From Obrimoposthia wandeli (taxonomy: Eukaryota): DNA of 64,000 nt. Within the stretch, counting starts at the first letter, position 1. Each line of letters begins with the position of its first letter. The notes under the pieces are model-generated. The model worked only from the letters and a program-made list of their open reading frames with translations. It made no database searches and was not told the DNA's origin. Made by a program: the position numbers and the translations under genes. Below, in pieces: positions 42,101-57,662 of the stretch. Location of the stretch: the NCBI GenBank assembly GCA_977020255.1, contig CDROCS010001561.1, positions 62,001 to 126,000 on the forward strand, written 5' to 3'.

Positions 42101-45100
42101 TAAAACCATGCAACAGTCACATCAAAGATTTATCAAATAAGAAATTAGGAATATTAGGAATACAAAGACACAAAGCTTTCGTTTCATTGTCACTGTAGGA
42201 ATCAATCAGTTTGCAAATGCAGTCAAACCTGTGTATATAAAAAATTAAATGCTTTGGAAAGGTTTACGGTGAAATGACCTCTTTAACTTTTCTAATAATT
42301 AAAGGTGCAATTTTTTTCCTTCTTTTGTATTCCTTCGTACTCATAAATGAAATTGTTCACATTACAAAATCTAATAATAATTAGATATCCTTTTCTACGA
42401 ATTTAGTAGTAAAAGTTTGTGATAGAAACAGATATTTACCGACCGTCGCTAACATTTTTCCATAATTCCAAACTTTTTATTTGTTGAATGCAATCGTTTA
42501 AAATTAGCAGTAAATATTTTCTGGTGTCATTTAAATAAATGGCCAAATTTCCAGGCCTTGGAGAGTTTAAACGACTTAGTAAACAACGTAGAAGGTAGAA
42601 GGATGGAGTCTAGATCACTTAACCCCCCCCCTTGTGCGCACACAATTTTAAAGGATTTCACAACATAAGGGTGTCACACCATAGAAATGTCACACCATAA
42701 AGGTATATTTTGACTCACCATAAGGGTGTCTTGCCACACCATAAGGGTCTGGCTCAGAAAGGTTAAGATAGGGGGAGGGGGAAGGGTTAAGTGATTTAGT
42801 CTTCACCCTTCTTTGGTTAACCACTAAAGGGTTTTGGTCGTCCATAATTCAAAGGGTCAGGCAGAGTTTTGACTTGAAGGTTTTAAGGCACAGAAAGAAA
42901 ATACCCAATATAAAATATATGAAATTTAAAAATCAGTAATAGAGAATTAAAGAATTACTAAACTCTGCTATTTTATATTCTTTTGTGCGACAGAAATACC
43001 AATTAGACAAAAGACCATCCACCGAACGGTCCGGGGAAATGTTCGAGGTGGAGCTGCATCAGCTGGGCAACGAGGGTAGCCTTGGGATCGGGATTGTGGC
43101 GCTGTCAGAGCCGGTGACAGGTATATTTGTGAAGTGTCTGCGCAAGCACAGTCAAGCCGACCGACTGGGCACAGTGCGAGTGCACGACGAGATCGTGGCT
43201 GTCAATGGAGAGTCTGTGTCGCATCGAACCAAGGACGAAGTCGCCCAACTCATGCTCCAGTCCGGAGCCGTAGTCCGTCTTCAATTGCGCAGAGAGTAGG
43301 TGACGTTCATTGTCACTCCGTTGTCCACTGATCGTGAGCTAGGCATTCTAAAACTGATCACTGCAAATTATGTTTGAGCTGCATAATTCAACTATCCACA
43401 TTTTTAGTATAAATGAACAAGCATAGCATGTGTATGAAAACAAATCTAAAGCCAATAAAAGTGTATAGGTGTTGCAATATTACAATACACCTTTGTGATT
43501 CATACAAGACGCAGTCAGAAGAAACCTTCAGAAGTACTCTTTTACTAATAACGGATATTGCCTAATAGTACGACCTCTCCTAATAGTATGACTATCCAAT
43601 AGTATGACTATAATTGAAATTAAATATACGAAAGGTGGAAATCCTAAACCACCTTCAATTTCCAGAGTAAATTCGTGGATTAAAGATTCTTGGAATGATT
43701 TATCTATAAACAATATTGTAAATTCTATAAAATCTGCTGGCTTCTCAAATGTTTGTGCTGATTTGCATATTTCTAAGCATGATATTTATGGTGATTTATT
43801 TTAGGTAGGATTTGTTGAAACTCTATCAAACAATAATTCTCAAGAATTGAAAGATTTATCAGATGATTCTGACTTATTTGATATAGAAGATGAATAAATG
43901 TTTATTTTATACTTATATTATTTCTAACAGTAATACCAATTTATTGTTTAGAAATAAAATATTTTGTAAATAATTATTAAAATTTATTATTTTATTTGAA
44001 AGGTCCAAATAGTATGACCATAACCTTTTTAAAGGTCATACTATTACAATAGTATGGCCCATATTATTTGTCAATATCCGATAGTTTTAAGTTCACATTT
44101 TGGCCACAAACACCTTCTTATCCCATAGTACGTTTCTTCTTCAGTAAACACTTCTTGTTTAAGTCTTCCGTCATTCACAAACACAGATTTTTTCAACATT
44201 GAACAATCTGTCATCTTCACGATTACCTTTTTCTACTTCTACTACTCCAAGCTCTAATTCTGCTGTTCTTTGACAAAAACTACGGTATTCATTGAGTAAA
44301 TCGGATACCAATCTTTTTAAATGATTTTGTATTAATCAAAACCTATTTCAATACGCAGAAGTACTCTGATAAAAACTCTGAAATGCCAATGATAAAATTC
44401 ATATTACGTAAGCATTTATGAGAATTGTGAAAATGTTGTGAAAACACTATTTTTACTTCTATTTGGTAGAGGGTACCATGAGAAAAGAGCTGTACTTGAC
44501 AGTTTCGGAGAGTCGCATGAAAATGCAAATGGAAAGAACACATGATAGATTTTTCTACCATACATCCGAGATCATATCTAACTATTTGGAAGACAATAGT
44601 GTAAGTTTAACCCCCTTGAAAATCTTTGACAGATAGATAAAGATCGTTGAAAACGTGAAAATGTAACAAACATTGGTGCATATCCAGATTCATTTTTTAT
44701 TGTACTAATGATGATGGTATTCAGAAAACCCTTAGCGAGCAGGAAAAGAAAACTTTAAAAATTAAGAACATTTTTCTTTTAATTTTATATAAATATGTAT
44801 GTATAGTACTTTTCCTAATTTCAAGCGGGCAAAGTTGAATTAAATGAAATAGTTGACTTGAATGCATTAAACTGTAGATTTTAAGGTTGTCTTTATTCTT
44901 TTTGGTCAATACTCTAATTTCAGAGTCGTGATTAATACCACTGCTATATTTAAATATTAATTAACGCATGAAAATATAAATTTTATCATTTATTCTTTCT
45001 TCTAATTCAGCAATTACTCAACTGACAATCAAAAATCACCGTTGAAAGTAAACGAAGAAAGATGCTTTTCAAGTACACCAAAAAAAGAATTGAAGGTAAG

Positions 45101-48100
45101 CATTTATAAGAATTTGACATAATGTTCACCGTATTTTAATCATCATTCAAATCGGTTATCTGGAAAAGAATTTTTTTAAATATTAATTTTTAAAATTTTA
45201 ACTTTTACTGAAATTTTAAAACTTGAGCTTTTTAAGTTGTTTTCTAAATTTTGCACTAAATTGTTGCTTATGATAAAATGTACACAAATATTATATTTAA
45301 ACTATTTAAAAAAGTTTATTTTGAGAATTTTAGTGAAACTTGATTAAAATTATTGATGTATCAGCGAGAATATTGTTATTAATAGTCTTCAAGTAATCTG
45401 AATAAATTATGACTAAGATAAATATATGCTCTAAACTTTATTAGTAAATGTTATCAACACTTATAAATAATGAATAAAATAGGTTTAAATGACTCGATTT
45501 ACAGTTAAGAGAAAGAGGATATAAACATAATTTATTCCATTTCTAGTCCTGATGTAATAATTTCTAAGAAATATGTTACAATATACAAATACAGTATTGA
45601 TATCTAATACTTACTAATGACAATTTAATTAAAAACTTCTTATGTATTACTTAATATTACTTAAATAACATAATCTTCAAAGTAGTATCAACAAGGATAG
45701 TATCAACAAGGATAGTAATATAATTTTATCAATTTTAAGTAACAAAACTTTTACAAATAAAAACTTTACAAAAGAAAGTAGAAAAGGAAAACAGTTACAA
45801 AATTTTAATAAATTGTTAAAAAAAACTTTTACAAAAAAATTAGATGAAATTTTAAGAAAAATAAATTTTAAAGAAGTAATTTAAAAAATTAAAAATTTGT
45901 GAATCGTTTTTAAATTGAATAAAACTTTTAGTTAAACGAATAAGATGCCTATAAAAATTGGAATTTAAAAAAATATATTTTAGAATAATTTGTTTCTCGC
46001 TAATTGACTGTAATAAACTCTCACTAATTGACCGTAATAAACTCTCACTAATTGTCAGTAACAAAGTCTCTTTAATGAACTATCAGTAGCTTTATAACAC
46101 AGAGGAAATATTTAAATATGTTGAAGATATTACAGAGAAATCCTTGAAATATTCAATGCTAAAAATGACATTAAAATCTAACTAAAATCGATGAAAATTG
46201 AACTTTTTTGCCTCTAAATTTACATTATTCTGAAAAATTAAAATCGATCAAATATAACTATAAAATGATCAACTATTCTCTCTATACTTTTCCTTGTTCC
46301 GAAAGACACATCGCCCTACTGGTATTGGTAATCAATGTGATTTGGTCAAATATGGAGTGATACAAAGATCATTTTTACAGTTTTATTCAAAGTTCTTTGC
46401 AATGTTTAATGAATTATTTGATTGGCTTATTAGCAATGAATTTTGTATATCAAGTCTTGCAGCTGTAATTGCATGTGCTAAAATTTTCTTGATATCTATA
46501 TCTATGAATTCTTGTCATATTTTCTTTCAAATGGATCTTTAATACATTAACTATCTTGTTTTTAACATAAGATATACAGGGTAATTTCTAAATAGTAATA
46601 CAAATTTGAATGGTGATAAAATAAAATAAATGTCTTACTTTATCAATTTTTAGGAACATTCGACAGATAATTCGATTTTAATCTAAATATTTACCTTTCA
46701 ATTAGTATGAAAAGAAAGCAATATGGTGTCTACATATCTTTAAATGAAATAATAAAGACTAGTATATAAATACAATTTATCTTCTCCAACAGATCGTTCA
46801 GTTTCAAAAAGTGAGGATGAACTTAAAGAATTATTATTCGAAATCCGCAACTTTGAGCAGTTAACTTTAGTATTTGCTAAAAATAAACGCTGGATGCGTA
46901 TGCTCAATTCTTTAATATTATTGCACTTTCTTACTGCCAATGGCAAACTATTATAAAGTTTGTATACATACACCCGGAAAATATGGTTTTATATTTGATA
47001 TAGATATTTAAATTACCACTCATCTTTTATCGTAATTTCTTTTCAAATTAATAGTACTTGGAATTTCAATCTCTAGAAGTTGATGCAAATACGGAGGTGA
47101 CTTTAAAACTTTTTTAGAAAAGCAGTCAACTCCCGATAATCCGAACTTTAAAAAAATAATTAGTTTCGGACAGCGTGTTTTTCGGATTACAGGGTTTTTC
47201 CTGAAAATGAACATAGATGCAGATATGCACATATTCATTCAATTATTTTCGACAAATTCATTCAATGTAGTTTGCCCAATGTTTTTTATACGCAATTCTT
47301 CGATATTTTCTTTCATTTCGGTCAAATGGTTTCTTAGATCTGGATGAAATCTTACTGAAACTTTATGTTATTTAAATAATCGACAATAACTTCAATTGCA
47401 TTGTACACATCTTTGACAGGAACTCCTGCTTCAACAATATCGCTATTGCCAACGTCATCATCACAGTTTTTTCTAGTTTTATCCGAAGAAATAAGTTGAA
47501 TAATTTCCTCGACGGTTATGTTGTCACCAGTTTTTGCATCAACAGTTTTTAGATCATTTATATATTTTATGGATGGATACAAACCATTGAAAATCGAATC
47601 AAATTCTTTTTTGATGAATATTTCTTCTGATTCTATACCACCAGTTTACCAAAAACAATTGTTAATTGTCTCTGGTTTTACTTTTCTCCAAGAAAGATAA
47701 ATTAAGAAAATTGTTTTTTTGACATCCACATGATACTCTGCATCTCTGTCTAAATGAGCCATATATTCTTGAACTAATAATAACTTAATTTTTTTGTTCT
47801 AATCGGTTGTAAACGTGTTGTAGTATTTTTTGGCAGCATGATAATGTCGAATTTTGAATATGTTTGTGTTGTTCTATGCGGAGGAGCACTGTCAACTAAA
47901 AGGGTTATTTTTCTTTTATAAATGAATAATTCGTCGTTCAAATGTGAGAAAAATTGTCATACATCACTGATGTCATAAACAAACTTATTAACATCAACAA
48001 ATTTTAAACTTCTTTTTGTGTTACCTATCATAAAGGTTTTGATCTTAATTGTTCCACTTGTGTTTGGACATAGAGCTGCAGTTATTCTACGTTTTTAAAT

Positions 48101-51100
48101 TTGATACCCTTTCTGTACTTATCAGATATGGAGTGCGAACGGAATGCTTGATAGAATAAACCCGTCTAATACATGTTTAATATAGTGTCTGGATCAATAC
48201 CATTTAACACGTCTAACAGTTTCTTTCTTCCTGATTGATCATCTTCAATGGAAGTAGAACTTTCTTCACCATAAAGAATTCTTTTCTTGACGTTATGACG
48301 GCACTTAAACCGATATAGCCACCCATTTGAATAGGCAAAATCACTAATACATTTTTCGTTGGCAAAATATTTGTCATTTTCAACGATAATCTCGTCATTT
48401 ATAAAGCCATTAGTAGCATTCATTAATCCAATCCAAGCTGTGAGAGCAACTTCTAAACTTTCAATTTTCGGATTACTTACTCTTGTAATCATTTTTCCTT
48501 CGTAATTCAGGCATTTTTCAAAATTCTTTATGATGTCCGATATTGTAGAAATACCCAAATTGATTCCATTTTCTCTCTAAATTAATGATCTAATATCTCC
48601 AATCATCCATTTTATGTTTTTCAATTTCAGTTTACATATTTTTGACTTGATGTTAGAGTGCTGAATGCAATGAAAACATTTTGGAGGTCTACCAATGAAT
48701 ATCCGTCAGAGGAAATGATAGAGTTTGATAAGAAATGTATTTTGGATGTTGCAAATGATCTTTTATTTGCGATAACTCTTTTTCCCCATTAAAACTTATA
48801 ATAATGATGAATCTTACAGTCTTGACTCTGACAGTGATTCTTCTGACGAATCGGAAACTGATTCAGAGTAACAAATAGAAACGAACTAAGAAAATGTAAC
48901 TAAATATATTTTTTTACAAATTTTGTTTTTATTGTAATTATTGAATATTGTAAATTATCAAATTTAGTTTTATATTTTTGAATTACTTTATTGATTTTGA
49001 CAATTCTAGCATTGAAAACAAAATATTTTATATAATTTATTTCAAACTTTCGCATTTGAAATATTCTAATAAAGTTACGTTAAAACAAACAAAGTGTATG
49101 AAGTTTCTAAATTGAAACTTACATACATAGTTTCAGATTTCACTATGTTTTAGCATTTACATTCATTTTAAAGGAAAATAATTATTTTAAAGTCGATACA
49201 GTGACATTGATTTAAATTAAATTTATTATTTATCTTTTATTTTGTGACTTTTGCTTGTAATGGTGTAATGTTCACCACCAGAAATCGAAAACAAACGAAG
49301 TATTTTACATACATTTCAGAAAAAAAGTTGATAATTATATTTAACATTCATTTTAAACGGAACTATTTGTGTTAAAATCGATAGGGGTATTAATTTTGAA
49401 GATAAAAATAATCATTTTTAAATCGTTAAATGCAAATTTATTCAAATTATTAAAAAAATACATTACATTTTGTGAAGATTTGAAATTTTTAAATAATGCA
49501 TTAAAATCCAAAATAAATCATTTTAAGTCTCTGACTTCAAACTGATAAAGCTATATACAAATATAGATATTTTTTAAATATTGAGTATTAATAACCACGA
49601 TTGACTTTTTTTCCTAGTAAAGAAAACATTGACGCTCACAAAACTGAAAAAGTAAATTTCTGCACTCCGCTCCTCGGTCGTTGCTCCCTCGTAAATTCAA
49701 AATCACCTCGTACTGAAAATTGATACTTTTCTAGTGTCATGTAAACTATCATGTTTTAGTTTGAAAGTACACGAAATTTCTTTCTCGATTACATCGCAAA
49801 CTTCACAAAATTTAAATAGAAATGATTTTGTGTCAATAATAAAACTATTTTTCATCTGCAGACGCTGAAAAACATCTTGGAGTCTAAGAGGCCATTAGAG
49901 CATCTAGATGAAGAGACAATGATGGATCTAGTTCCGTCTCTGCAGTTGTCTTCTGCTCGAATCAGCAACAACATGAAGTCGTTAAATTTAGATTTACATT
50001 CAAAAACGGAGTATCGTTTGCTACAGAATGTTCTTGGTAGATATGGCCAAGTTATACCAGGTTGGCGAATTGCTGAATGCTAGTTTAATTGAAAGATTGT
50101 TGTAAAATGAACCCCATAACATTGCGTAACAGATAATAACTTTCATTTTTTTTTTAACGAAATAGCATATTTTCAGTCTAAATTTGGTGGCTTAATTCAA
50201 AAAATAGTTCACCTCGTCAAGATTTTGATATATCGATATGGTTAGAAACACAGTTTTTACACAAAGTCATGATATAACAATTTGCAGATGACGAGTAATT
50301 GAGATGTGCATTAAACTGCGAATAGTGTCTAACTCGATACGGACAAAAACAAATATACTTTATACCACTAGTCTCGAGAAAGTAAAATCATAATATGATT
50401 TAAATTTCACTGACTTTATTTTCGATTAGAAAGTTCGATGTTCACTGAGCAGCTGCTTTGACCATGTGTCCGTGTCTTGCCAGGCTCAAAGCTACCTCCT
50501 ATGGTTCGTCTGGACCTGGCAGCCGTGAGCACCGTTCTTCTGAACCACAAGCTGCCTCTCAACTTCCTGGTGTATGCTAGTCCCGGCCTCAAGCGAGCCT
50601 CCTCGGATGAGTACTGGCGCCACATACTCATTCAGCGCTGTCCACTCGTGGTCCAGCTCAACTTTGGCTACTCAACGACCATCACCAAAAGTCAGGAGAA
50701 TGGACACCAGCTCAATGGTCTGCGCCGACCTTTAGAGTAAGTAAAATTTGCAACCCCAAATAATTTCCTATTTTTTACTTTATATTGTTTCTGTGCAAAC
50801 CTGTATATGTAATTCAGTTTTTCACATATATCCGTGAGTTTTAGCAATCCCAACCGTATTTTACTGCTTGTATGTACTATTTTAATCCGGTGAAAAATCA
50901 TTTTTCAAATAATATTTGATGTTTAACTGTTTAAGTGCAATGGAAATGACGTAATGCTAAAATCAGAACAAAGTCTATGTATAGTTTTCCAGGAATTACA
51001 TACTGCGCGGGACTGTGACTGGCTGTCCGAATGTTGCTACTACATAGAAGAAAATATAATGAGATTATTTAGTAACTTAATTTGATTTCCTGACGACATT

Positions 51101-54100
51101 TATCATTTAGTTTTCTATTGTGGCTAAGCATGACAATAGAAATGAGAATGGAATAATTTTTAATTGTTGAGAAAACCCTTCTATCAAGAAAAAAGATATT
51201 GCTTCACGTTTTCATTTCAAGCAGAAAACATGTAGTGATTTTCTTTTTCAACAGTTCAGCGGTGTACGTTTATCATATATGCTCACAAACTGGTTAGTAC
51301 TACATAATTAAACATTGCACAAGAATCCTTACTCGCCCAATCAGTTACATTTGACAACAAACGTATAAGTGAGCACCAATCTTTACAATTGGACAATTTA
51401 CTCTTAATATATTATTCAATATATGCAAAGAAAAATTCGATGTAGCCAAAATTCCTTATAACCGAAATCTATTGTAATTTTATTTTAAATGTAAAATTTT
51501 CATGTTTACGCATCTCAGATTGGTTCAAATTATAATTTTCTGATTCTTCACTGTTCAATGTGTAACAATGAGCAAGAACAAAAAATACGAGTGTATATGA
51601 GTAAGTAGGTATGTGGTCTCTAAGTCCCTCTATGGTCCCTTAAGTATCTTATTTTCCCGGTTATATATGCTATATTTTTCCTATATGTTCTTCAGTGTGT
51701 TCTTCAATTCTTTAGGACTGTATATTTGGTCTGATCTTGGTCAGACATTTGAGGGTGAACCTATAGGGGTCAAAAAATATATTTATACTTTTTAATAGGA
51801 ATTGAAATGCACTTGGTTTCACCTTCATAAAACCTTCAAAAATTATTACATATGTCTAAAACCTTCAAAATTTTAATTTTTCTACTTTCAAAAGTTTTAT
51901 TTGATAAGATTTGGTCTTGAAGGTCAACTTTCAAGGGTACAAAACTTTCAAATATTATTACAATAGTATAAAACAGTTTTTTTCTACTTTTTGAAGGCCA
52001 AATGCACTTGGTCTGAATCTGATTAGACCTCCGAAAATCAATATAAAAGGGTACACAACATTCTTTTTTTTAATTTAAAAAAAAAATAATTATAAAACAA
52101 TTTTAAAAAAATAATTAAATTTTCCACAAAATATTATAAAATTAAAAAAATAGCCTTCAAATTTAAAATGTTTTACATTCCTTGTACTTTTTTTTTTTTC
52201 ATACGTTATTTATGTTTTTTTTAATTTTAACTTCGTACAAAACTTTCTGTTGTAAAATCTTTTTGTTCTAAAATCTTTTGTAAAAACATTTTGTTGGTAA
52301 ATCTTTTTGTTGTAAAATTTTTTTTCAAATACTTTTTGTTAAATCTTTGTAAAATACATTTTGTTATAAAATCTTTTGTTAAAACTTTTTTTTGTAAAAA
52401 CCTTTTCTTATAAAAACTTTTTAAATCCTTATTATTCATTGTATACGAAAATTACACAATAAAGACAAGAACATTTTCTAAAACTAAATATTTGACATAA
52501 GAACAATAAAAATGTGTTTACTAAAATCAGTCAGGATGCAAATAATGTCCATATGCAACTGACTCGTTCTTGCTAATCCATTTTTTCTTGTTTTCGTAGG
52601 CATTTAATGCGATCTTGGAAGAGACTATGGTAAACAGCTGATGATTGAGGGACTGGAACCGGCGTATTGGATTCGCTGGCTTTCTCCAGTATTGTAGACC
52701 TTCATATGTGTTTCGTGCTTTATATTGATCTGCTTGATGCTCACTCTCTTACCTTTCATGGATTCTGAACTCTTCTCTGCCAGCATGCTATATGTTTTAG
52801 CGTATAGATATATACATTCGCTAAAAATCCTAACCCCTTCACTTTCATCCTTAAACTTACCTATAGCAGTTTTCACTCTAGTATATAGTGGATGAGTTTT
52901 TTTGGAACTTTGACGTATTTAATAATCCATTTGCTATCATAGCCGGTAATAGTTGACCGAGGACATCGATATTTTGACAGTTTAAGAAGAAACTGTCAGT
53001 GTCACCAGCCAGTACTCGGATATCTCGGATAAATAATACCGTAACTAAATCGTCGTCTATCTCAATCGATTTCCTAAATTTAACCTTGCTAGTATAAGTC
53101 ACTAATCTTGATCCCTAACTCGGTCATCAGCACCCATAGCTCCATGACACAAGAAACAAGTTGCAGCCAAACGAAAACTACTTTTTTGTGTCCGTGTCAG
53201 TGGATTCATTCTCGCCACTACATGTCATTTATACCATGGCAAAAAAGTGAACATAGCAAAATTTTCTATCTGAGTTAAAAAGTGAATAACACAATCAGGT
53301 CCGGTTAAACTGTGATTGCGTTGCCTTTAGGGCTGAACAGAAAATTCCCGCAGCAGTTGGAAGGAGTTTTGTGCATATTGATGATGCAGAGGTAAAATTG
53401 ACTCAAAGTCAAGTCGGTGAATTAGAGACCATATCTACCTACTTAAATGCACTTAAATCAAACTGAGTGCATAACTGATCATTGGATCACTCTGGATGAC
53501 GTGACGCTGTTGTTACCCATCTGTGAGGATGTAGCATTGGATGTGTGTTGATTGGTGTGTATTGTATTGTTTCTGTTGCCATGTGGCAAAATTATTATTC
53601 ATATACAATAATCATTAAATTGATTATTGATTGATTAATGAAAATCTGAATTTAAAATGTTTCAAATACAAACCATTTGTTATTCTGATTTTAGTGACTG
53701 AATTAATTGTGGAAAGTAAACCTACCACCATTTCAGGATCCTGATGGAGAAGAGCGTAGACCTCAACAAGTGTCTTAATCTACAGTGTGTGCGCATCAGC
53801 GAAAGTCCCACCTCCGAGACTAGCCACCGGGTTCTGTTGCTCCGCTGCACCACCAGCTTCAGTTCGCTCAACAAAGACAGCCTCGCCGTTCTTCTCAATG
53901 TGAGTGGACATCAAGTACCAAAGGGTCATCACGGTATCTGAAATCTTCTGCACTATTTGTAGTACAAAAATAATTGTTGACATGAAGATGTGACTAATTT
54001 CTACTCGAATATTTTTCTTTAATTCGTTTAAATCAATAATATCACGTTTAGAATTTTTAGTATTTAATAAAATTAAAATAACTTTGTGATAAATGAGGTA

Positions 54101-57100
54101 TGATAACAATATCAGTATCAATATGAAACATATCATTGATTAAATGTGATTATCATTTATTTAAATACATTTATTAAACAACGATTTAAAGATTTCATTA
54201 TTTGGTTGCTCGCGGTCACTGAATATCGGTTTTGGAATCTCAACAGTTTTGTGACAATTTAGTTTCTCCCTAATACGGCGAATTGAATGAAAAAAGATAT
54301 ACCGGTATCATTTGTTTTGATCTACTAATGTTCTAAAGCGATTGTTTTGAAATACACGTTGGTTGCCGTATAAAATGGAAAATAAACCTGAAGACAGTCA
54401 AATCAAAGATAACATTTTTTACCCTAATTATCTTTTGATTAAAGCTGACATTTTACATTTAACTTTCCTCCAAGCAAAGAATAGAAATTCTTTAAAAATC
54501 GATGACCGAAATGCAAACTTTAACCGTTAATCATCACAGTGAAAATAAAAACTGATATTCATAAAGTTTGAGGGGTCTATCTTATTATTTCTTACTTTGA
54601 AAAGGTTGTGTTATGTTCTTTTGAGATAGTGCTAGGAAGTGCAGGATTCAGAAATGTGGGGAATCCCTGATTTACACAAAATGTGTGTGATCAAAACACT
54701 TCTCATGTTATTGATTTTCTCGTAGTTTAAATATTTAAATTTCATGTTCATATTGATTAATTTATGTGTGTTTTTAACAGAGGTCAAAGTATGCCCATGG
54801 CAAATGTGTCTAGATACATTGCTGTAAAGTGTTGGTGTTCATTCTGATTTGTCTGTTCACAGGTTCTCAATATCGCCAGTGCCATCAGCCGCAACGTCAG
54901 CAACGGTCACACAATTTGCCTCAGTCCCAGCATCATTGATGCCCGAGTCGGCATGGCGATGGTGCTGTTTGGCACCGTCCATCTCTTCAATCGAGACGAC
55001 AACCCGCAACCGTCATCTGGCCCAGCTCCCATCATGAATAGTCATGTGAGTTTAAATGTTTACACAATAAAACAACGGTATTTTCAAAATCAGTAAATAT
55101 TATTTTTATTTATTTCGGATTACTTCATTGATTTTTTATTTATTGATGATTGCAACAACGCTTTTCTGAATCCCGAACCTCACATCACATTCACCCAAGC
55201 GTAAACTAAATTTCATTTCTCTATTCACCAAATCCTTCTCCTTCAGACTATCGTTTATCATCTCTTCCACAAGGTCATCAGTCAAAGACGTGATTGGCTA
55301 CCGTCAGAGGTGAGGATACTTTCATTTTCTTAATCCTTTTTTACCGTGACGATAAAAGGAAAATTACTATTTACATTGTAATAGATACTGTAAACTACTA
55401 GATACTGTTTTACAAAATAGTGGCGGAACGATATAGAAACGATGAATTGTGTGGAATGCATTTGCAATGCTATTTTCTGATATCTCCATCAGGATTTACC
55501 CTAAAGCCTAACAAACCACGCACATAATTGTAAATGAATGATGTTGATAGATTTGGATTGGCATATAACAGTAGATGTGTGTTTTTTTAATTCGGTTGGC
55601 ACAAGCATCTCAAGTATAGTGGTGCTCTAACTTCAGATACTTGGTTTTTTAAACATTTTGAGTTAAACCCTCTTCTACTTAAATTTGATTGAAGTCATCA
55701 AATGCCTAAAATTGAGATTCTCGCTTCTGATCCCTATCGCTCGATAGCTACCATACATTTTCCTATATAAATTTCCTATGTATATATAACAAAAAAGTAT
55801 TTTTGGGTCTAAACCACGAAACATTCCAAATAAAGTTTTAATGATTTTGGTACCTAACCAATTTATTGCATTATCAACTTCGTGATACTTTTAATTCAAA
55901 GTGTACATCCTGGAGAAATGTATCTAGAATGAAGGGTACTCAATTTTAGTATTTAAACCCCCTAGGAAAGTATCCTAAAAACATAGTGATGGTGGAGGGA
56001 AAATTGGGACTTGCCTTGTGATCTTAGATCGCTATAGTTGCAAAACATTATGTAAAACTAAAAAACCGTATGACAAAATTAAAATATAACAAATGAACCA
56101 TATATACAGGGTGTCCCATAACGAATTACCCATGTTAAAAAATATTATAAAACGATTATAAATTCGATCAAAATCTTCAAGATTTTTAACTTTGCATGGA
56201 GTATATATTTGCTACACATCCTTATTGTTTCGTTTTACTATATTAATTTTATCAATAAGATATGGCGCCAGAAACAAAACGTGCCCAAATTGTTGCATTA
56301 AAAAATGCTGGAATTTCTAACAGTGATCTAGTAAAGCAGCTGGGTGTGTGTCGCAAAACTGTTTTCAACGTCATAATGCACGAAATTTCGCTTGAAGTGC
56401 ATTTACCACAGATTATTACCAAACATCGATGGCAAGAGACATTCGTTTTATTGAGACAAGTGTAGCATTGATTCCACTTCAAGATTCTGGAAATTCCTTC
56501 ATTTTCCCGCCTACGATATTCTTCAGTGGGTGCCTTACATAAAAGATCAAAGAGGAATTATCTTCAACTGATTTGAGGTGCTGGTGATTGCTTATAAAGG
56601 ATACATGCATTAGTACCACCCCAAATGACATAGATTATAAATTATAGCAAGGGGCAAATGACGTAACAAATAAATCAAATTCAAGAATACAAAATCTTTT
56701 TCGACAAATCAAAACATTTTGAAAATAATATCAACAACAACAATTTATGTAGATAAAGAAATCGCTGACATATCCGACGATTTAGGTTCTTCAAAAAATG
56801 TATCGAATATGGATCAGTATCATCATTAATATCTACTTGAAAAATATTTTCGTCTTCAAATTCATTTTCTGTCTCTTCTTCACCTGAGTTGTCCTCGGCA
56901 TTGCTTTTTCCAAAAGTTCTTTGATATTGTAATGTTTTGCCTATTTTATTTCATTAATTAAGTTTAAATATGCAATAGTGGTCAAAATGACCGCTTGGGC
57001 AGTTAAACAGTATGATCAAATATACCTATAAAAATAAGGATAACTGTAAAAATATACGTTTATATAAAATCCCCATTAAAATTGAGTGAAGGTTTTTTAA

Positions 57101-57481
57101 TTTCAAACGGATAGAAACATGAAATCGGTGCATCAAAATCTGAATGAGACCCATCGAATTTAAAAGACTCCCTAAAGATGTCCAAATATGTCAATTTTTA
57201 AAAAATAAGTTCAAAGAAAACCCTTTAAATCTGAAAATAAATAAATCTCCTCTGTTTATAATCTTTAATTTTATCAGGGCTCTAAGACTAAATTTCCAAT
57301 GTTGGATGTTTTAGGGTATTTCCCACCTCTGGAATTCGTTCTCTAAAATATTTGTTGTTCATTGTAGGCGCAGTTCGGAGAGTGCATGTACAGTCTGGCC
57401 GCATTGTGCGACGGTAAAGTCCTTGGTAACCTCAACAGTTCCTCCTCCAATCAGCAACAAGATCAGTCCGATGTAGAATGA
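709..57481 (+). CDS. PTPN13: PTPN13-like multi-exon gene (5' part outside window): KIND(C-term)-linker-FERM-PDZ-degenerate PTP
   Basis: GC-richer segments bounded by AG/GT sites splice into one frame from 28346 to the stop at 57481 (one ambiguous junction at 39.3-40.3 kb). Domain order KIND-FERM-PDZ-PTP is characteristic of PTPN13; FRMPD2 lacks the PTP domain. Linker exons between 0.8 and 22.4 kb are less certain. Confidence 0.82.
920..1385. mobile_element. Possible MITE-like element with imperfect inverted repeats
   Basis: ctccgacaaaatcgtctagcacgctatttccca (~935-968) is an imperfect inverted match to tggaaaatagcgcgtgggaaaattttcacggag (~1341-1373); an inner inverted copy ttgtcggagagaaa lies near 1212. 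Confidence 0.35.
1610..1890 (-). mobile_element. DNA-transposon-derived fragment, paralog of 34430-34710
   Basis: Clear nucleotide similarity to 34430-34710 (shared tgaccctgacttattaata and cttcggtatctatct...atatagaaatt). Confidence 0.65.
2827..2883 (+). CDS. Candidate linker exon after KIND (VQEKVNGRIRFLTTELSRL)
   Basis: gtgttag acceptor, open in phase 0, slightly GC-richer. Only a weak donor (gttatc), so the 3' boundary is uncertain. Confidence 0.3.
3150..3290 (+). repeat. Dispersed ~130-bp repeat, second copy at ~20025-20155
   Basis: Shared tatcgta(g/t)acataattcaagactta(a/g)attccacaacacaat and ccggtttctg(t/a)ttac(a/g)taactt. Confidence 0.75.
3483..3567 (+). CDS. Candidate linker exon (SKPESMIHRRQPKTTTASGKITIK...)
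   Basis: cttacccaatag acceptor; only the phase-0 frame is open. Donor ambiguous (gttgaa or gtcaga). Confidence 0.4.
5068..5169 (+). CDS. Linker exon (IWMFPKDSLINSESNRQSFISDSSQYLSTTNIH)
   Basis: ccctcttgcag acceptor, GA|gtatgt donor, one open frame (phase 2-2), Ser-rich. Confidence 0.55.
5300..5800 (+). mobile_element. 3' end of a CR1/L2-clade-like LINE
   Basis: Translates to PNLYNKLPMDVRNCNSVEKFKKH, the typical post-RT C-terminal motif x-L-x-N-x-L-P-x-x-I/V-R...F-K. Confidence 0.6.
9163..9305 (+). CDS. Linker exon (SKTNSVEGSDVELTATRGNRQHSLLLEDCRSNHTDSAHQRLSYFDSS)
   Basis: Strong polypyrimidine acceptor cttctctttcag, donor AC|gtgaga, open frame in phase 0. Confidence 0.65.
9492..9729 (-). 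pseudogene. Degenerate 28S (LSU) rRNA fragment, antisense to host gene
   Basis: Contains reverse complements of conserved LSU segments: catcccacatcgccagttctgcttaccaaaaatggcccact and ctgctatcctaagagaaacttcggaggtaaccagctactagatggttc. Has an internal deletion and substitutions relative to canonical 28S. Confidence 0.9.
10248..10282 (+). repeat. Second short 28S-derived copy, inverted relative to 9492-9526
   Basis: aattttggtaagcagaacgggtgatgtggaatgag is the reverse complement of 9492-9526 with 5 mismatches in 35 nt. Confidence 0.8.
10320..10760 (-). mobile_element. Heavily degenerate Tc1-like transposase C-terminal relic
   Basis: Weak, frameshifted similarity to FQQD...WP-x-x-SPDL...AVI-x-A-x-G-x-x-T-x-Y. 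Confidence 0.35.
11400..12620 (+). mobile_element. pogo/Tigger transposon relic (DDE_1 domain, C-terminus, right terminal region)
   Basis: Translates to NAFGDFNLKHMLVHRAENPRAL, KILLLLDNARSH and NVKVIFLPP; Tigger-type C-terminal ORFs 11965-12461; subterminal gaacggattaaccg near 12585. Confidence 0.85.
13280..13810 (+). mobile_element. Internally deleted Tc1/mariner-family element
   Basis: TA-CAGGATGTCTC terminal motif; C-terminal DLNPPDVF-x-WGYFKHIFYGQKPETLTEL...NRCQ. Confidence 0.7.
14381..14473 (+). CDS. Linker exon, frame ambiguous (IPRVNRVSWFQQISPEPFSPPTPVKEVHWQ or NPKSQQSQLVSTDIPRAFFSPNPSERSTLAT)
   Basis: aatcctttag acceptor, CG|gtagga donor, GC-rich island in AT-rich intron; two frames are open. 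Confidence 0.5.
15175..15760 (+). mobile_element. Tigger transposon 5' relic (CENP-B-type HTH)
   Basis: TA-CAGGAATACC terminus; ORF 15546 MERVVSIWIENCKQTKIPL...FIASSGWFDR. Confidence 0.8.
16620..17450 (-). mobile_element. Tc1/Tc3-like transposase relic
   Basis: ORF 16843..17085 RNFGDGHIMICGAFS...DSLDYQNVL corresponds to FGGGSVMVWGAF...NS-x-x-Y-x-x-V-L. Confidence 0.75.
17673..17777. repeat. 105-bp near-perfect palindrome (mini-MITE-like)
   Basis: 44-bp arms with 2 mismatches: atatgttagaccaaatttgcgaaaacaacaattttgcaaaattg versus its inverted copy ending ...tctaacatat. Confidence 0.85.
19581..19616 (+). CDS. Possible small linker exon (LVPTLMQCDSPE)
   Basis: aactgaccag acceptor and a short GC-richer open stretch; weak donor. 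Confidence 0.25.
21022..21218 (+). CDS. PTPN13: Pre-FERM linker exon (...ESLECSESAMSTTSDSTNNSVAMTALNRAPRSNYLLVNSIDLSASIVATQNRAKARKKLSGVIGP)
   Basis: GC-rich open frame (ORF 21011) ending CCG G|gtaaat. Basic patch followed by GP resembles the pre-FERM RKK..GPEF segment of PTPN13. Acceptor uncertain (21009, 21022 or 21026). Confidence 0.7.
21964..22030 (+). CDS. Pre-FERM exon, two frames open (VRTKISGTSNIQDFGGVQLGDS or CVQRFLELRIFKISVEFNLEIP)
   Basis: ttaatttcag acceptor, CCAG|gtcggt donor. Confidence 0.55.
22357..22432 (+). CDS. Pre-FERM exon, two frames open (IGRLNQVMFESNNQISTTAHIAADR or SVDSIKSCSNLIIKYQQLLISLRT)
   Basis: ctcatttcag acceptor, consensus donor gtgagt. Confidence 0.55.
23100..23900 (-). 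mobile_element. Degenerate piggyBac transposase relic
   Basis: Frameshifted matches to the DN-x-F-T-S...GT-x-R-K-N-R region and the C-terminal KW-Y-x-x-L-x-F segment (NWYYHLIF). Confidence 0.5.
24720..25040 (+). mobile_element. Tigger HTH fragment
   Basis: EEFIFSKGWLQKFQER followed by RGE matches the S-x-GWL-x-x-F...GE motif. Confidence 0.65.
28346..28541 (+). CDS. PTPN13: FERM F1 exon (IRRTRLSRAESSRVLSLNVSVQLLSGLTLNIRGLLKHSTVSTVIETVGQAHPDLEFVNYGLCVMI)
   Basis: V-x-V-Q-L-L-S-G start of FERM F1 and YGL motif; ATT G|gtgagt donor; possible acceptors at 28346 and 28369. Confidence 0.8.
29330..29620 (-). mobile_element. IS630/Tc1-like transposase N-terminal HTH relic
   Basis: ORF 29366..29548 NGEDYFLLVQKLGINRHSVRYLIFRY...GPKGGSKPK. 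Confidence 0.65.
30301..30451 (+). CDS. PTPN13: FERM F1 exon (DDEYFFLRVENIVADIAQYLNRKKPKADGEKCLHLFYRLQFYPTPESLHA)
   Basis: ttgcttcag acceptor, gtgagt donor. DEYFF and LFYRLQFY match DNEYFF...LFFRIKFF of the PTPN13 FERM domain. Confidence 0.9.
31945..32103 (+). CDS. PTPN13: FERM F2 exon (DAISQRQLYLQLRQDIVHRNCPPLTFSDSITLAGLAMRAEYGDPGDEAQDDK)
   Basis: Y-L-Q-L-R-x-D-I and L-A-x-L-A-x-x-A-E-Y-G-D FERM motifs; gtcag acceptor, gtgagc donor; phases match neighbours. Confidence 0.93.
32230..33000 (-). mobile_element. Degenerate Tc1-like transposase relic
   Basis: K-x-P...MIWWGCVNISGFRTL corresponds to the MVWGC-x-x-x-x-G-x-G-x-L motif. Confidence 0.55.
33465..33606 (+). CDS. PTPN13: FERM F2 exon (QMTVENYFHSSFHRYLDAYENETEFLLQHQNCWKSFSWQECQRRFIE)
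   Basis: catcag acceptor, GAG|gttagt donor, phase 2-0; corresponds to E-H-Y-L-P...E-x-E-x-x-F-L-K. Confidence 0.85.
34306..34710 (-). mobile_element. Relic of a widespread metazoan transposase-like family (motif EP-x-L-x-SQ-x-E-L-N-D-L-x-x-D-L-x-L-S-K-x-x-x-E-x-L-x-S-R-L)
   Basis: ORF 34306..34527 reads KEPVLISQGQIHYLITYLNVSKRQDEILGSRLQ; I cannot name the superfamily with confidence. Confidence 0.6.
34821..34871 (+). CDS. PTPN13: FERM F2/F3 junction exon (RVQEQRFYGMHWYRVNK)
   Basis: YG-x-H-x-x-x-V FERM motif; atttttcag acceptor, AAG|gtaata donor; 51 nt, phase 0-0. Confidence 0.88.
36141..36174. repeat. (TA)n microsatellite
   Basis: About 17 TA units. Confidence 0.95.
36340..36617 (+). CDS. 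PTPN13: FERM F3 (PH-like) exon (NQLEVMGALGKETCLLIGCDGIQLVDK...FCYKWRQIEVISLKQKKLIVIKPR...CHIDSHT)
   Basis: L-x-I-x-x-x-G-I and F-x-W-x-x-I-x-x-I-S-x-x-x-K-K motifs; cccag acceptor, gtaagt donor. Confidence 0.9.
36690..37228 (+). mobile_element. Tc1-like element, 3' half with right TIR
   Basis: IFMHD...SN-x-LEDN-x-V...N-P-x-E-N-I DDE remnant; ends ...ttcaatttgccaatactg|TA, the reverse complement of the left TIR CAGTATTGTCCAAATT seen at 38811. Confidence 0.75.
37231..38075 (+). mobile_element. Tc3-like element, 5' half (HTH to GGGVMV region)
   Basis: PGQYNTKNRVG (compare P-x-x-Y-G-T-K-K-R-x-G-R); REFGGGVMVYGFITFNG; IDGT-x-N. Confidence 0.65.
38590..38756 (+). CDS. PTPN13: FERM C-terminal helix and linker exon (AKYIIRLCRKHHLLASQFEDSTIVNGADNPSQYQQQKYESNKMISRRGLPSHLRS)
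   Basis: K-A-K-Y-I-I-R-L-C-x-x-H-H matches the FERM terminal helix; cgcag acceptor, G|gtgagt donor. Confidence 0.85.
38811..39235 (+). mobile_element. Internally deleted Tc1-like element with left TIR
   Basis: TA|CAGTATTGTCCAAATTAATTGAAAC, then YVDGIM and IFMHD...SNYLEDNGVRMLD*P. Confidence 0.75.
39780..40060 (-). mobile_element. Tc1/IS630-family transposase C-terminal relic
   Basis: PVPQIRPIEDFFRMLKQDIYSTG matches P-x-x-P-Q-x-R-P-I-E-x-F-W-x-x-L-K-x-x-V-Y. Confidence 0.7.
40265..40370 (+). CDS. FERM-PDZ linker exon (probably MTILETIPVTSQRKRTMEVEVPVKPKRAQSEDLDV)
   Basis: cttttcgtcag acceptor (an upstream acceptor at 40146 is also possible), gtgagt donor; frame chosen to fit the 41355 exon. 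Confidence 0.65.
40830..41140 (-). mobile_element. piggyBac (PGBD2/3-like) transposase fragment
   Basis: Frameshifted similarity to the YN-x-x-MGG and W-W-x-x-I-F...N-A-x-x-L region (FYNTTGG...IFWLSILL...SANVYML). Confidence 0.45.
41355..41413 (+). CDS. Linker exon (EIFDSDNQLKLKPSLKDFGR)
   Basis: ttgttttag acceptor, AGA|gtaagt donor, phase 1-0, joins the PDZ exon in frame. Confidence 0.7.
41660..42140 (+). mobile_element. LINE reverse-transcriptase relic
   Basis: Degenerate I-x-P-L-F-K, ISFLS-K-F, W-F-K-S-x-L...I-D-G-T-V-S-D-P and VLQDS (compare VPQGS). Confidence 0.65.
42600..42900. repeat. GC-richer repeat with inverted ends and internal caccataagggt units; related to 58700-59430
   Basis: ctagatcacttaacccc...gggttaagtgatttag inverted pair; shares gatggagtc(t/c)aga(t/c)cactt and aagggtctggctcag with the 58.7-kb copy. 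Confidence 0.7.
42994..43295 (+). CDS. PTPN13: PDZ domain exon (MFEVELHQLGNEGSLGIGIVALSEPVTGIFVKCLRKHSQADRLGTVRVHDEIVAVNGESV...VRLQLRR)
   Basis: GSLGI carboxylate-binding loop, GIFV, A-D-x-x-G-x-x-x-x-x-D-E-I-x-x-V-N-G; cgacag acceptor, GA|gtaggt donor. Confidence 0.93.
43551..44081 (+). mobile_element. Non-autonomous pogo-like element retaining transposase C-terminus
   Basis: Inverted ends cggatattg / caatatccg; subterminal aatagtatgac repeats at both ends; ORF 43604 TKGGNPKPPSISRVNSWIKDSWNDLS...IKSAGF. Confidence 0.75.
44450..44900 (+). mobile_element. Third copy of the Tc1-like 3' half seen at 36690 and 38900
   Basis: Shared gtaccatgagaaaagagc, ctaccatacatccgagatcatatctaacta and tttcaagcgggc...agttgaattaa. 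Confidence 0.75.
45011..45095 (+). CDS. PDZ-PTP linker exon (NYSTDNQKSPLKVNEERCFSSTPKKELK)
   Basis: ctaattcag acceptor, AAG|gtaagc donor; phase 2-0 bridges the PDZ exon and the 49862 exon exactly. Confidence 0.75.
45990..46065. repeat. Tandem ~21-bp repeat, about 3 copies
   Basis: actaattgac(t/c)gtaataaactctc units. Confidence 0.8.
46740..46975 (-). mobile_element. LINE 3' end fragment (CR1/L2-clade-like)
   Basis: ORF reads KLYNSLPLAVRKCNNIKEL...L-x-x-L-F-L. Confidence 0.6.
47123..48640 (-). mobile_element. pogo/Tigger transposon relic with terminal repeat
   Basis: ORF 48166..48558 (CENP-B HTH, FAYSNGWLYRFKCRHNV...GE); C-terminal ORF 47352..47582; terminal motif cagtcaactcccgataatccgaac at 47123. 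Confidence 0.85.
49862..50060 (+). CDS. PTPN13: Start of PTP-like domain (TLKNILESKRPLEHL...LSSARISNNMK...LGRYGQVIP)
   Basis: ttcatctgcag acceptor; RYGQVIP aligns with the pTyr-loop motif NRYxxILP; CCA G|gttggc donor. Confidence 0.75.
50484..50736 (+). CDS. PTPN13: PTP-like domain exon (SKLPPMVRLDLAAVSTVLLNHKLPLNFLVYASPGLKRASSDEYWRHILIQRCPLVVQL...)
   Basis: Degenerate equivalents of RVxL, YINAS, YIAxQGP and DFWxMIWEQ; cttgccag acceptor, gtaagt donor. Confidence 0.82.
51600..52030. repeat. Motif-rich repeat (accttcaaa / ttgaaggtc units), possibly a Maverick terminal region
   Basis: Repeated aaaaccttcaaaa and gcacttggt; lies beyond the 3' end of the PolB relic; shares motifs with 58700-59430. 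Confidence 0.4.
52230..52430. repeat. Degenerate AT-rich tandem array (about 11-14-bp units like aaaatctttttgt)
   Basis: Direct inspection. Confidence 0.8.
52540..53110 (-). mobile_element. Maverick/Polinton protein-primed DNA polymerase B, C-terminal relic
   Basis: ORFs 52878..53102 and 52625..52876: LAGDTDSFFL (YxDTDS motif), IGKFKDESEG, K-x-Y-S and K-G, all typical of the Polinton pPolB C-terminus. Confidence 0.85.
53737..53899 (+). CDS. PTPN13: PTP-like domain exon (ILMEKSVDLNKCLNLQCVRISESPTSETSHRVLLLRCTTSFSSLNKDSLAVLLN)
   Basis: catttcag acceptor, AAT|gtgagt donor, phase 2-0; covers the region where the WPD loop should lie, and no WPD is present. Confidence 0.8.
54863..55045 (+). CDS. 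PTPN13: PTP-like exon with degenerate P-loop (VLNIASAISRNVSNGHTICLSPSIIDARVGMAMVLFGTVHLFNRDD...)
   Basis: ttcacag acceptor, CAT|gtgagt donor, 183 nt; SPSIIDARVG aligns with HCSAGIGRSG. Confidence 0.8.
55247..55309 (+). CDS. PTPN13: PTP-like exon with Q-loop region (TIVYHLFHKVISQRRDWLPSE)
   Basis: Strong acceptor ccttctccttcag, GAG|gtgagg donor, 63 nt; VISQRRDWLPSE|AQF aligns with MRxQRxGMVQTxxQY. Confidence 0.82.
56105..56520 (+). mobile_element. Internally deleted Tc1/mariner (maT-like) element
   Basis: TA-CAGGGTGTCCC terminus; ORF 56262 KRAQIVALKNAGISNSDLVKQLGVCRKTVFNV is an HTH. Confidence 0.75.
56520..57006 (-). mobile_element. Internally deleted piggyBac element
   Basis: On the minus strand: TTAA then ctgcccaagcggtcattttgacc terminal motif; acidic N-terminus (EDNSGEEETENEFEDE); C-terminal NACILYK...FLFDL. 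Confidence 0.6.
57368..57481 (+). CDS. PTPN13: Terminal coding exon (AQFGECMYSLAALCDGKVLGNLNSSSSNQQQDQSDVE*)
   Basis: cattgtag acceptor; QF-x-x-C-x-x-x-L terminal PTP helix; TGA at 57479-57481. Confidence 0.82.
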   Translation, partial: AQFGECMYSLAALCDGKVLGNLNSSSSNQQQDQSDVE

Positions 57482-57656: not shown

Positions 57657-57662
57657 AATAAA
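57657..57662 (+). promoter_or_regulatory. Candidate polyadenylation signal AATAAA
   Basis: First AATAAA ~175 nt after the stop, followed by T-rich sequence. Confidence 0.55.

Follow-up and report, generated by a model that had tools for sequence, protein, structure and literature searches.

A protein tyrosine phosphatase-like domain stripped of catalytic residues at the likely 3' end of a fast-evolving FERM-PDZ gene of Obrimoposthia wandeli

Exon structure of the PTP-like domain

The window analyzed here is a 64-kb stretch of contig CDROCS010001561.1 (C1561) from the genome of Obrimoposthia wandeli, which carries on its plus strand six exons of a protein tyrosine phosphatase (PTP)-like domain with lost catalytic motifs, downstream of exons for FERM and PDZ domains. 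Feature coordinates are window positions unless they bear a contig or locus prefix. Assembled by script from the exon coordinates, the joined model comprises 948 nt, or 316 codons, with 0 stops before the TGA at 57479-57481, and all five introns are of the GT..AG type, with the ten splice dinucleotides intact. The other five frames of the joined exon DNA contain 10-28 stops, and a run of 316 codons without a stop has a probability of 1.3e-6 at the base composition of the exons and 1.5e-11 at that of the introns. The in-frame joining of six exons had been proposed in an earlier reading made from the sequence alone (the sequence-only reading) and is borne out, as is the position of the motifs quoted there: SPSIIDARVG lies at 54923-54952, TTSFSSL at 53849-53869, and PSE (55301-55309) joins AQF (57368-57376) in a string that is interrupted by the last intron. 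The features of this 3' part are as follows.

49862-50036, plus strand: exon 1, N-terminal lead-in of the PTP-like domain; the least certain exon
50484-50736, plus strand: exon 2, PTP motifs 2-6 as relics, with the DFW/IVMLT relic at 50576-50659
53737-53899, plus strand: exon 3, beta-sheet and WPD-loop region, with the WPD relic TTSFSSL
54863-55045, plus strand: exon 4, strand, P-loop relic SPSIIDARVG, helix, and a 14-residue Pro/Ser-rich insertion
55247-55309, plus strand: exon 5, pre-Q-loop helix, ending with QR plus 7 residues (PSE) at a phase-0 intron
57368-57481, plus strand: exon 6, AQF start (second half of the Q-loop), last helix, Ser/Gln-rich tail, and stop codon TGA
57657-57662, plus strand: AATAAA, a possible poly-A signal 176 nt past the stop; weak evidence in an AT-rich genome

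Exon 1 has a pyrimidine tract and CAG acceptor, a GTAGAT donor, and a GC content of 0.39. The last intron carries a remnant of a transposase helix-turn-helix (56262-56465, plus strand; Pfam HTH_23, E = 7e-6), probably a Tc1/mariner fragment.

Intact FERM-PDZ-PTP genes of the same genome

Searches of the organism's own genome, which covered 1.35 Gb, revealed two intact FERM-PDZ-PTP genes, referred to below by their contigs (loci L006, L007, and L012-L015 cover the two genes).

C249, 30352-77721: FERM at 30352, PDZ at 69731, PTP at ~72.7-77.7 kb; HCSAGIGRTG and WPD kept
C3303, 86109-157064: FERM at 86109, PDZ at 127199, PTP at 154-157 kb; HCSAGIGRTG and WPD kept

Among single-domain PDB chains, the PTP exons of both genes are nearest to PTPN3/PTPN4, and their PDZ domains carry a GRYGF signature. 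The C249 domain has a Q-loop reading QTPAQF, with Phe for the usual Tyr, and an acidic insertion of ~19 residues after its YWP motif.

Loss of catalytic residues

For the comparison at residue level, the model was aligned on the C249 PTP domain and residues are given in PTP1B numbering. PTPs use the P-loop Cys as nucleophile and the WPD loop as the source of the general acid, and they recognize phosphotyrosine (pTyr) through the KNRY loop. The corresponding positions read as follows.

Cys215, the nucleophile: Pro in the model
His214: Ser in the model
Two Gly of the P-loop: Ile and Ala in the model, plus an Asp in the loop
Arg221 of the P-loop: kept in the model
WPD loop (general acid): replaced by TTSFSSL in the model
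Gln262, first Gln of the Q-loop: Pro in the model
Gln266, second Gln of the Q-loop: kept in the model

Only two catalytic determinants thus survive, the Arg of the P-loop and the second Gln of the Q-loop, and the KNRY loop is unrecognizable in the model. The nearest Cys is found three residues upstream of the canonical nucleophile site and 8 residues before the Arg, and no CX5R is formed. These losses agree with what the sequence-only reading had claimed, namely, Cys changed to Pro with the Arg kept, a replaced WPD loop, and PSEAQF in place of QTxxQY. Moreover, CX5R in a PTP context, WPD, QTxxQY, and KNRY are absent from every frame of the window and also from the flanking 20 kb of the contig on each side, and therefore no hidden active exon was found. 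Lacking the nucleophilic Cys, the Asp of the WPD loop, and the first Gln of the Q-loop, the domain is incapable, judged by its sequence, of cysteine-based catalysis; its binding of phosphate is also doubtful and would probably be poor.

Evidence for PTP ancestry

With respect to the origin of the domain, we observe that exon 2 is similar to the positionally equivalent exon of C249 (L006:4214-4468; BLASTP, E = 8e-5, 11/28 residues identical), with the similarity spanning the AxxG..D-[FY]-WR..LVV-x-L core, and that the N-terminal half of the model reaches a Smith-Waterman z of 6.3 against C249, a score matched by 1 of 2000 shuffles. The match of exon 4 to the C249 P-loop exon (L006:7034-7225) is not significant (BLASTP, E = 1.4), and its best high-scoring segment pair has the register proposed in the sequence-only reading, S-P-S..R-V-G over H-C-S..R-T-G. 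Exon 3 is placed by collinearity only; the model and C249 share a W-to-H spacing, from the WPD motif to the P-loop, of 35 residues.

In a sliding-block test, ungapped blocks of the C249 domain were scored at all ~285 positions of the model, with the following outcome for three of them.

DFW block, 33 aa: best score 42 (z = 6.5), next-best -6; rank 1 at the collinear position
P-loop block, 34 aa: best score 18 (z = 4.1), next-best -1; rank 1 at the collinear position
Q-loop block, 31 aa: best score 16 (z = 3.7), next-best 6; rank 1 at the collinear position

The expected register was not recovered in this test with blocks of short motifs (KNRY, DYINAS, and WPD), the KNRY-loop block finding its expected position in exon 1 only as third best (z = 2.8). 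When the blocks were taken from a larger set of PTP domains, the expected register came at rank 1 in 20/20 cases for DFW, at rank 1-3 in 22/23 for the P-loop, and at rank 1 in 13/20 and rank 4 or better in 19/20 for the Q-loop, these 20-23 domains being related to one another and hence replicates rather than independent trials.

The intron positions provide a further line of evidence. The model, C249, and C3303 all have a phase-0 intron exactly 7 residues past the conserved QR, where it separates the two variable residues of QTxxQY, and in the model (57368) as in C249 (L006:7676) the exon that follows begins with AQF. Two other introns were compared with C249 and are not counted as evidence: intron 1 has the same phase and is 2 residues off in one alignment and not conserved in another, and intron 3 has the same phase and is 4 residues off.

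Collinear core motifs are accordingly recovered along the model (YIAxQGP..DFWxM..IVMLT, the strand-P-loop-helix unit, and QR..QTxxQY with its helix). We consider it very probable that the six exons encode a PTP-derived domain, because of the exon 2 match, the blind registers of the P-loop and Q-loop blocks, and the identical position and phase of the Q-loop intron. As judged from these comparisons, the resemblance to PTPs exceeds chance by the register and intron tests, not by standard E-values. Of the PTP fold claimed in the sequence-only reading, the derivation of the sequence from a PTP is thus supported, and the fold itself would be retained in the spliced protein.

Upstream FERM and PDZ exons

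Upstream, on the same strand as the PTP-like exons, lie FERM and PDZ exons and a candidate linking exon.

31838-32104, plus strand: FERM central-domain exon (open stretch), Pfam FERM_M, E = 1.8e-7
36316-36618, plus strand: probable FERM C-lobe exon (open stretch), weak Pfam FERM_C, E = 0.064
42994-43295, plus strand: PDZ exon, Pfam PDZ, E = 1.3e-10; donor GA/GTAGGT leaves phase 2
49618-49690, plus strand: hypothetical 73-nt linking exon, the best of three candidates, leading from phase 2 to phase 0

The sole PDB matches of the FERM_M exon are to the PTPN21 FERM domain (E = 6e-5), the full-length PTPN3 chain in the PDB not being matched, and a genome-wide FERM_M profile scan matches the same exon at C1561:93934-94143. 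A PDB search with the FERM_C exon gave 0 matches. The PDZ exon, which is the only PDZ match on the contig (Pfam on the window and genome-wide PDZ scan), is of the GLGI type and finds INADL, PSD-95, GRIP, and PTPN13 PDZ2 as its best PDB matches; the PDZ of PTPN3/4 is absent among the best 60. The long intron between the PDZ exon and exon 1 contains a Pogo/Tigger-type transposase remnant (47352-48558, minus strand; Pfam HTH_Tnp_Tc5, E = 8.5e-11).

No further GC-rich open exon was found between the PDZ exon and the PTP-like exons. Since the PDZ exon ends in phase 2 and exon 1 starts in phase 0, at least one additional exon is required. A scan from 43310 to 49855 for stop-free AG...GT segments that are 3n+1 nt long returned three candidates; the one at 49618-49690 has a T-rich tract before its AG, a GTAAAT donor, and a GC content of 0.44, and it lies 171 nt upstream of exon 1. 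From the position of the FERM and PDZ exons upstream on the same strand and the existence of an in-frame candidate for the link, we infer that one gene joins the FERM-PDZ exons to the PTP-like exons, the linking exon itself being only a candidate.

Signs of a maintained coding sequence

Across the putative gene (616-57481), exons are GC-rich (0.48-0.56, with exon 1 at 0.39) and the GC content at third codon positions (GC3) rises up to 0.7, against a background GC of 0.27-0.33. The joined PTP-like exons have GC1/2/3 values of 0.53/0.38/0.61, and the five introns between them have a GC content of 0.30-0.33. The PDZ exon shows the same pattern (0.67/0.38/0.63), and the values for the FERM_C exon are 0.54/0.37/0.70.

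The divergence is not confined to the 3' end. The FERM exons are so divergent that only one of them passes the Pfam threshold, and the entire gene is therefore fast-evolving, beyond its PTP end; in the C-terminal part of the model, the best-kept blocks have 7/34 and 6/31 identities with C249. An open frame, exon-like GC3, and intact splice sites despite such deep divergence argue, if indirectly, for a coding sequence under continued selection rather than in decay. The sequence-only reading called the gene maintained and not a pseudogene, and the open frame, the splice sites, and the GC3 (0.61 versus ~0.31 in introns) speak against decay; the gene is presumably expressed.

A probable dead PTP-derived domain and the competing explanations

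We estimate at about 60% the probability that these exons close a fast-evolving FERM-PDZ scaffold gene at its 3' end and encode a dead PTP-derived domain. In the protein, the structural landmarks would follow each other in their usual order (DFW/IVMLT core, strand-loop-helix at the P-loop, and helix-Q-loop-helix), with the chemistry lost. Such a protein could act as an adaptor at the membrane cortex, its FERM domain binding membrane or cortex, its PDZ domain binding C-terminal peptides, and its dead PTP fold being retained as a structural or protein-docking module. A pseudophosphatase is a non-catalytic protein of phosphatase fold whose gene is maintained and expressed; phosphatase ancestry and the loss of essential catalytic residues are found here, and the open frame, the splice sites, and the GC3 favor maintenance. 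It is a tentative and rather unlikely extension that selection has long kept, for docking alone, a PTP fold stripped of every catalytic, phosphate-binding, and pTyr-recognition determinant as the last part of a FERM-PDZ adaptor, in which case triclad flatworms in general might share the domain as their counterpart of PTPN13/PTPN20. If true, this would go one step past the known substrate-trapping pseudophosphatases.

Several results weigh against a dead PTP at the end of a FERM-PDZ gene. Pfam, with whose Y_phosphatase family the sequence-only reading had suggested an alignment, gave no family for any of the six exons searched singly at E ≤ 10, and no similarity was detected between exon 3 and its C249 counterpart. 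Searches of the PDB (phmmer) with exons 2, 3, and 4 yielded nothing or chance matches (bacteriorhodopsin), and an ESM Atlas feature search with exons 2 and 4 gave no usable match. Against a reference set of 21 LAR/receptor-type PTP domains, the joined model came 315th of 924 reported matches with the LAR-type PTP hidden Markov model (hmmsearch, 2001 targets), which is shuffle level; hhalign, in local and in global mode, likewise did not separate it from shuffles, with a score of 16.8 versus 14.3 ± 2.6 and 33/200 shuffles reaching at least that value; and pairwise scores (Smith-Waterman and global) had z of ~1. The C-terminal half of the model alone is not significant against C249 (z = 1.0). 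No orthologue of exon 2 was found among 1.84 billion representatives, a search for homologous proteins with the PDZ exon gave 0 matches, and the organism's own genome holds one copy each of exon 2, exon 4, and the PDZ exon, with no paralogue or haplotig found. Finally, the phase clash between the PDZ exon and exon 1 puts a direct splice out of frame. In addition, the model is not significantly similar to the C3303 PTP, and contig C1561 is not among the matches listed (150 of 155) in a genome-wide PF00102 profile scan. The phmmer search of exon 2 against the same 1.84 billion representatives returned three matches, of which two are repeat-protein artefacts; the third, P0002, is a fragment with tandem PTP domains that aligns through its FIATQG..DFW..IVMLT motif.

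That no standard tool reports a PTP would be expected if the resemblance were chance pattern-matching and the exons encoded an unrelated or novel C-terminal domain. We regard this as very improbable, however, given the E value of 8e-5 between exon 2 and the positionally equivalent PTP exon, three blocks that come out best or within the top 3-4 of ~285 offsets in collinear order, and a Q-loop intron and AQF exon start that are identical. Decay has somewhat more to recommend it and is still improbable: the exons would be a remnant, either the unused 3' end of a working gene or part of a gene that is as a whole a unitary pseudogene, and this is suggested by the loss of all catalytic motifs and by the divergence of the whole gene, in which the FERM exons are barely detectable. 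At the base composition of the introns, however, neutral drift predicts ~24 stops in 316 codons where 0 are seen (P = 1.5e-11 for none), GC3 remains at 0.61 versus 0.31 in introns, and all ten splice dinucleotides are intact.

The phase clash bears on a third explanation, in which the PTP-like exons form a separate transcription unit for a dead-PTP protein of its own, with the Met pair of exon 1 as one conceivable start. A gap of 6.5 kb with transposon remnants separates the PDZ exon from exon 1, and separate as well as joined FRMPD2/PTPN20 transcripts have been documented (PMC3335823), the first vertebrate annotation being similarly split. On the other hand, both groups of exons share a strand and the same unusual GC3-rich coding style, the well-flanked 73-nt candidate exon would restore the frame, and exon 1 begins at a strong acceptor rather than at a promoter-like start, all of which makes a separate unit rather improbable, if less so than decay. 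A single FERM-PDZ gene with a dead PTP-derived end thus remains the reading we prefer.

Family assignment

The sequence-only reading labeled the gene PTPN13-like. In favor of this label are a PDZ domain of the PTPN13-PDZ2/INADL type and the C-terminal PTP relic, and it is weakened by the single PDZ and by a KIND domain that was not detected: a whole-genome scan with the Pfam KIND profile gave 0 matches, as did the profile's own controls. The 5' exon at 616-906 has no Pfam match, and a sub-ORF (open reading frame) at 691-909 has chance-level PDB matches only, of which 3/4 are kinase proteins (best kinase, E = 0.84; ROS kinase, E = 0.93). Of the architecture that marks PTPN13/PTPN20, we find on the contig a FERM domain with one PDZ instead of several (five), and the C-terminal PTP as a degenerate relic. 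A PTPN13/20-type gene with a reduced number of PDZ domains is therefore possible.

The architecture of FERM, one PDZ, and PTP relic also fits PTPN3/PTPN4, a group marked by a Band-4.1-type FERM, one GRFGF-type PDZ, and a PTP, from which the PDZ type and the FERM_M match differ. It is conceivable, though we consider it unlikely, that the gene adds a third, very divergent member to this (Ptpmeg) group, which would leave the reading of the domain as dead unaffected. The single PDZ and the lack of a KIND match would fit such a member, as would a PDZ-to-PTP linker that is short if the candidate exon is used; moreover, C249, with its PTP and PDZ of the PTPN3/4 type, is the only gene to which a PTP similarity could be detected, and the genome already has two Ptpmeg genes (C249 and C3303). 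Against this, the PDZ does not have the GRYGF-type signature common to both of these genes and matches INADL, PSD-95, and PTPN13 PDZ2, with no PTPN3/4 PDZ among the best 60 PDB matches; the FERM_M exon matches the PTPN21 FERM only and not the full-length PTPN3 PDB chain; and the PDZ exon has no paralogue in the genome. On these comparisons, the family would be either PTPN13/20-type or a third, very divergent Ptpmeg-type, and the gene is not a recent copy of C249 or C3303.

Comparison with known phosphatases and pseudophosphatases

PTPN13 and PTPN20 retain HCSAGxGRSG, WPD, and QTxxQY. The gene described here resembles PTPN13 (PTP-BL/FAP-1) and its paralogue PTPN20/FRMPD2 in the order of FERM, PDZ, and C-terminal PTP-type domain and in its PDZ of the PTPN13-PDZ2/INADL type, but PTPN13 has five PDZ domains where this gene has one and no detected KIND, and the domains of PTPN13 and PTPN20 keep their catalytic motifs whereas this one is dead and lies below Pfam detection. 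With PTPN3/PTPN4, C249, and C3303 it shares FERM, one PDZ, PTP, and the phase-0 Q-loop intron, and with C249 also the AQF exon start and the only measurable PTP similarity; C249 and C3303, however, keep HCSAGIGRTG, WPD, and a GRYGF-type PDZ, none of which is present here, and neither the FERM nor the PDZ of this gene finds a paralogue in the genome. That the scaffold part of the PTPN13 family functions without phosphatase activity is in line with the mild phenotype of the Ptpn13 deltaP mouse, which lacks the PTP domain (PMC3335823, PMC9900141) and with FRMPD2, a PTP-less product that is a scaffold without PTPN20 (PMC3335823). The dead domain is thus no conceptual surprise, pseudophosphatases being accepted and the scaffold roles of PTPN13-type proteins being largely independent of catalysis.

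The classical-PTP pseudophosphatases, an established group, include HD-PTP/PTPN23 (PMC2661844), PTPRU D1 (PMC7320164), the D2 domains of receptor PTPs, and IA-2/PTPRN. All of these resemble the present case in that an inactive PTP-family domain is kept in a maintained gene; the difference is that their PTP domain is easily recognized, whereas here the Cys, the His, two P-loop Gly, WPD, and KNRY are lost. HD-PTP and PTPRU keep the catalytic Cys (PMC9900141, PMC7320164), and PTPRU has been reported to sequester pTyr substrates. With the Cys, the His, the P-loop Gly, and the WPD and KNRY loops gone, substrate trapping by the domain modeled here is unlikely. In the literature we searched, neither a dead FERM-PDZ PTP nor a flatworm pseudo-PTP of this type was described, and no FERM-containing classical PTP figured as a fully dead pseudophosphatase.

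As far as the sequence allows us to judge, the domain is an unusually eroded example of an already known class of pseudophosphatases. It shows that a PTP can erode below sequence detection by Pfam and the PDB with its frame and codon style kept, a point to be borne in mind when phosphatomes are counted by profile matches. If expressed and conserved in planarians, the gene offers an RNA interference test of a FERM-PDZ adaptor without phosphatase chemistry.

Other PTP and PDZ sequences in the genome

The PF00102 scan also revealed, on at least 8 contigs, many near-identical pairs of PTP exons that span positions 10-85 and 170-221 of the profile and have identical bit scores (e.g., C3788:20106-20351 with C3788:29535-29699, as well as pairs on C5893, C3270, C1387, C6679, and C2037), which suggests a recently amplified PTP gene family or PTP cargo borne by an element. 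In the genome-wide PDZ scan, dozens of matches lie in uninterrupted frames of 430-760 aa (e.g., C253:295284, C665:1677936, and C372:1303250); these look like bacterial protease-type genes (HtrA or Ctp-like) on bacterial contigs in the assembly.

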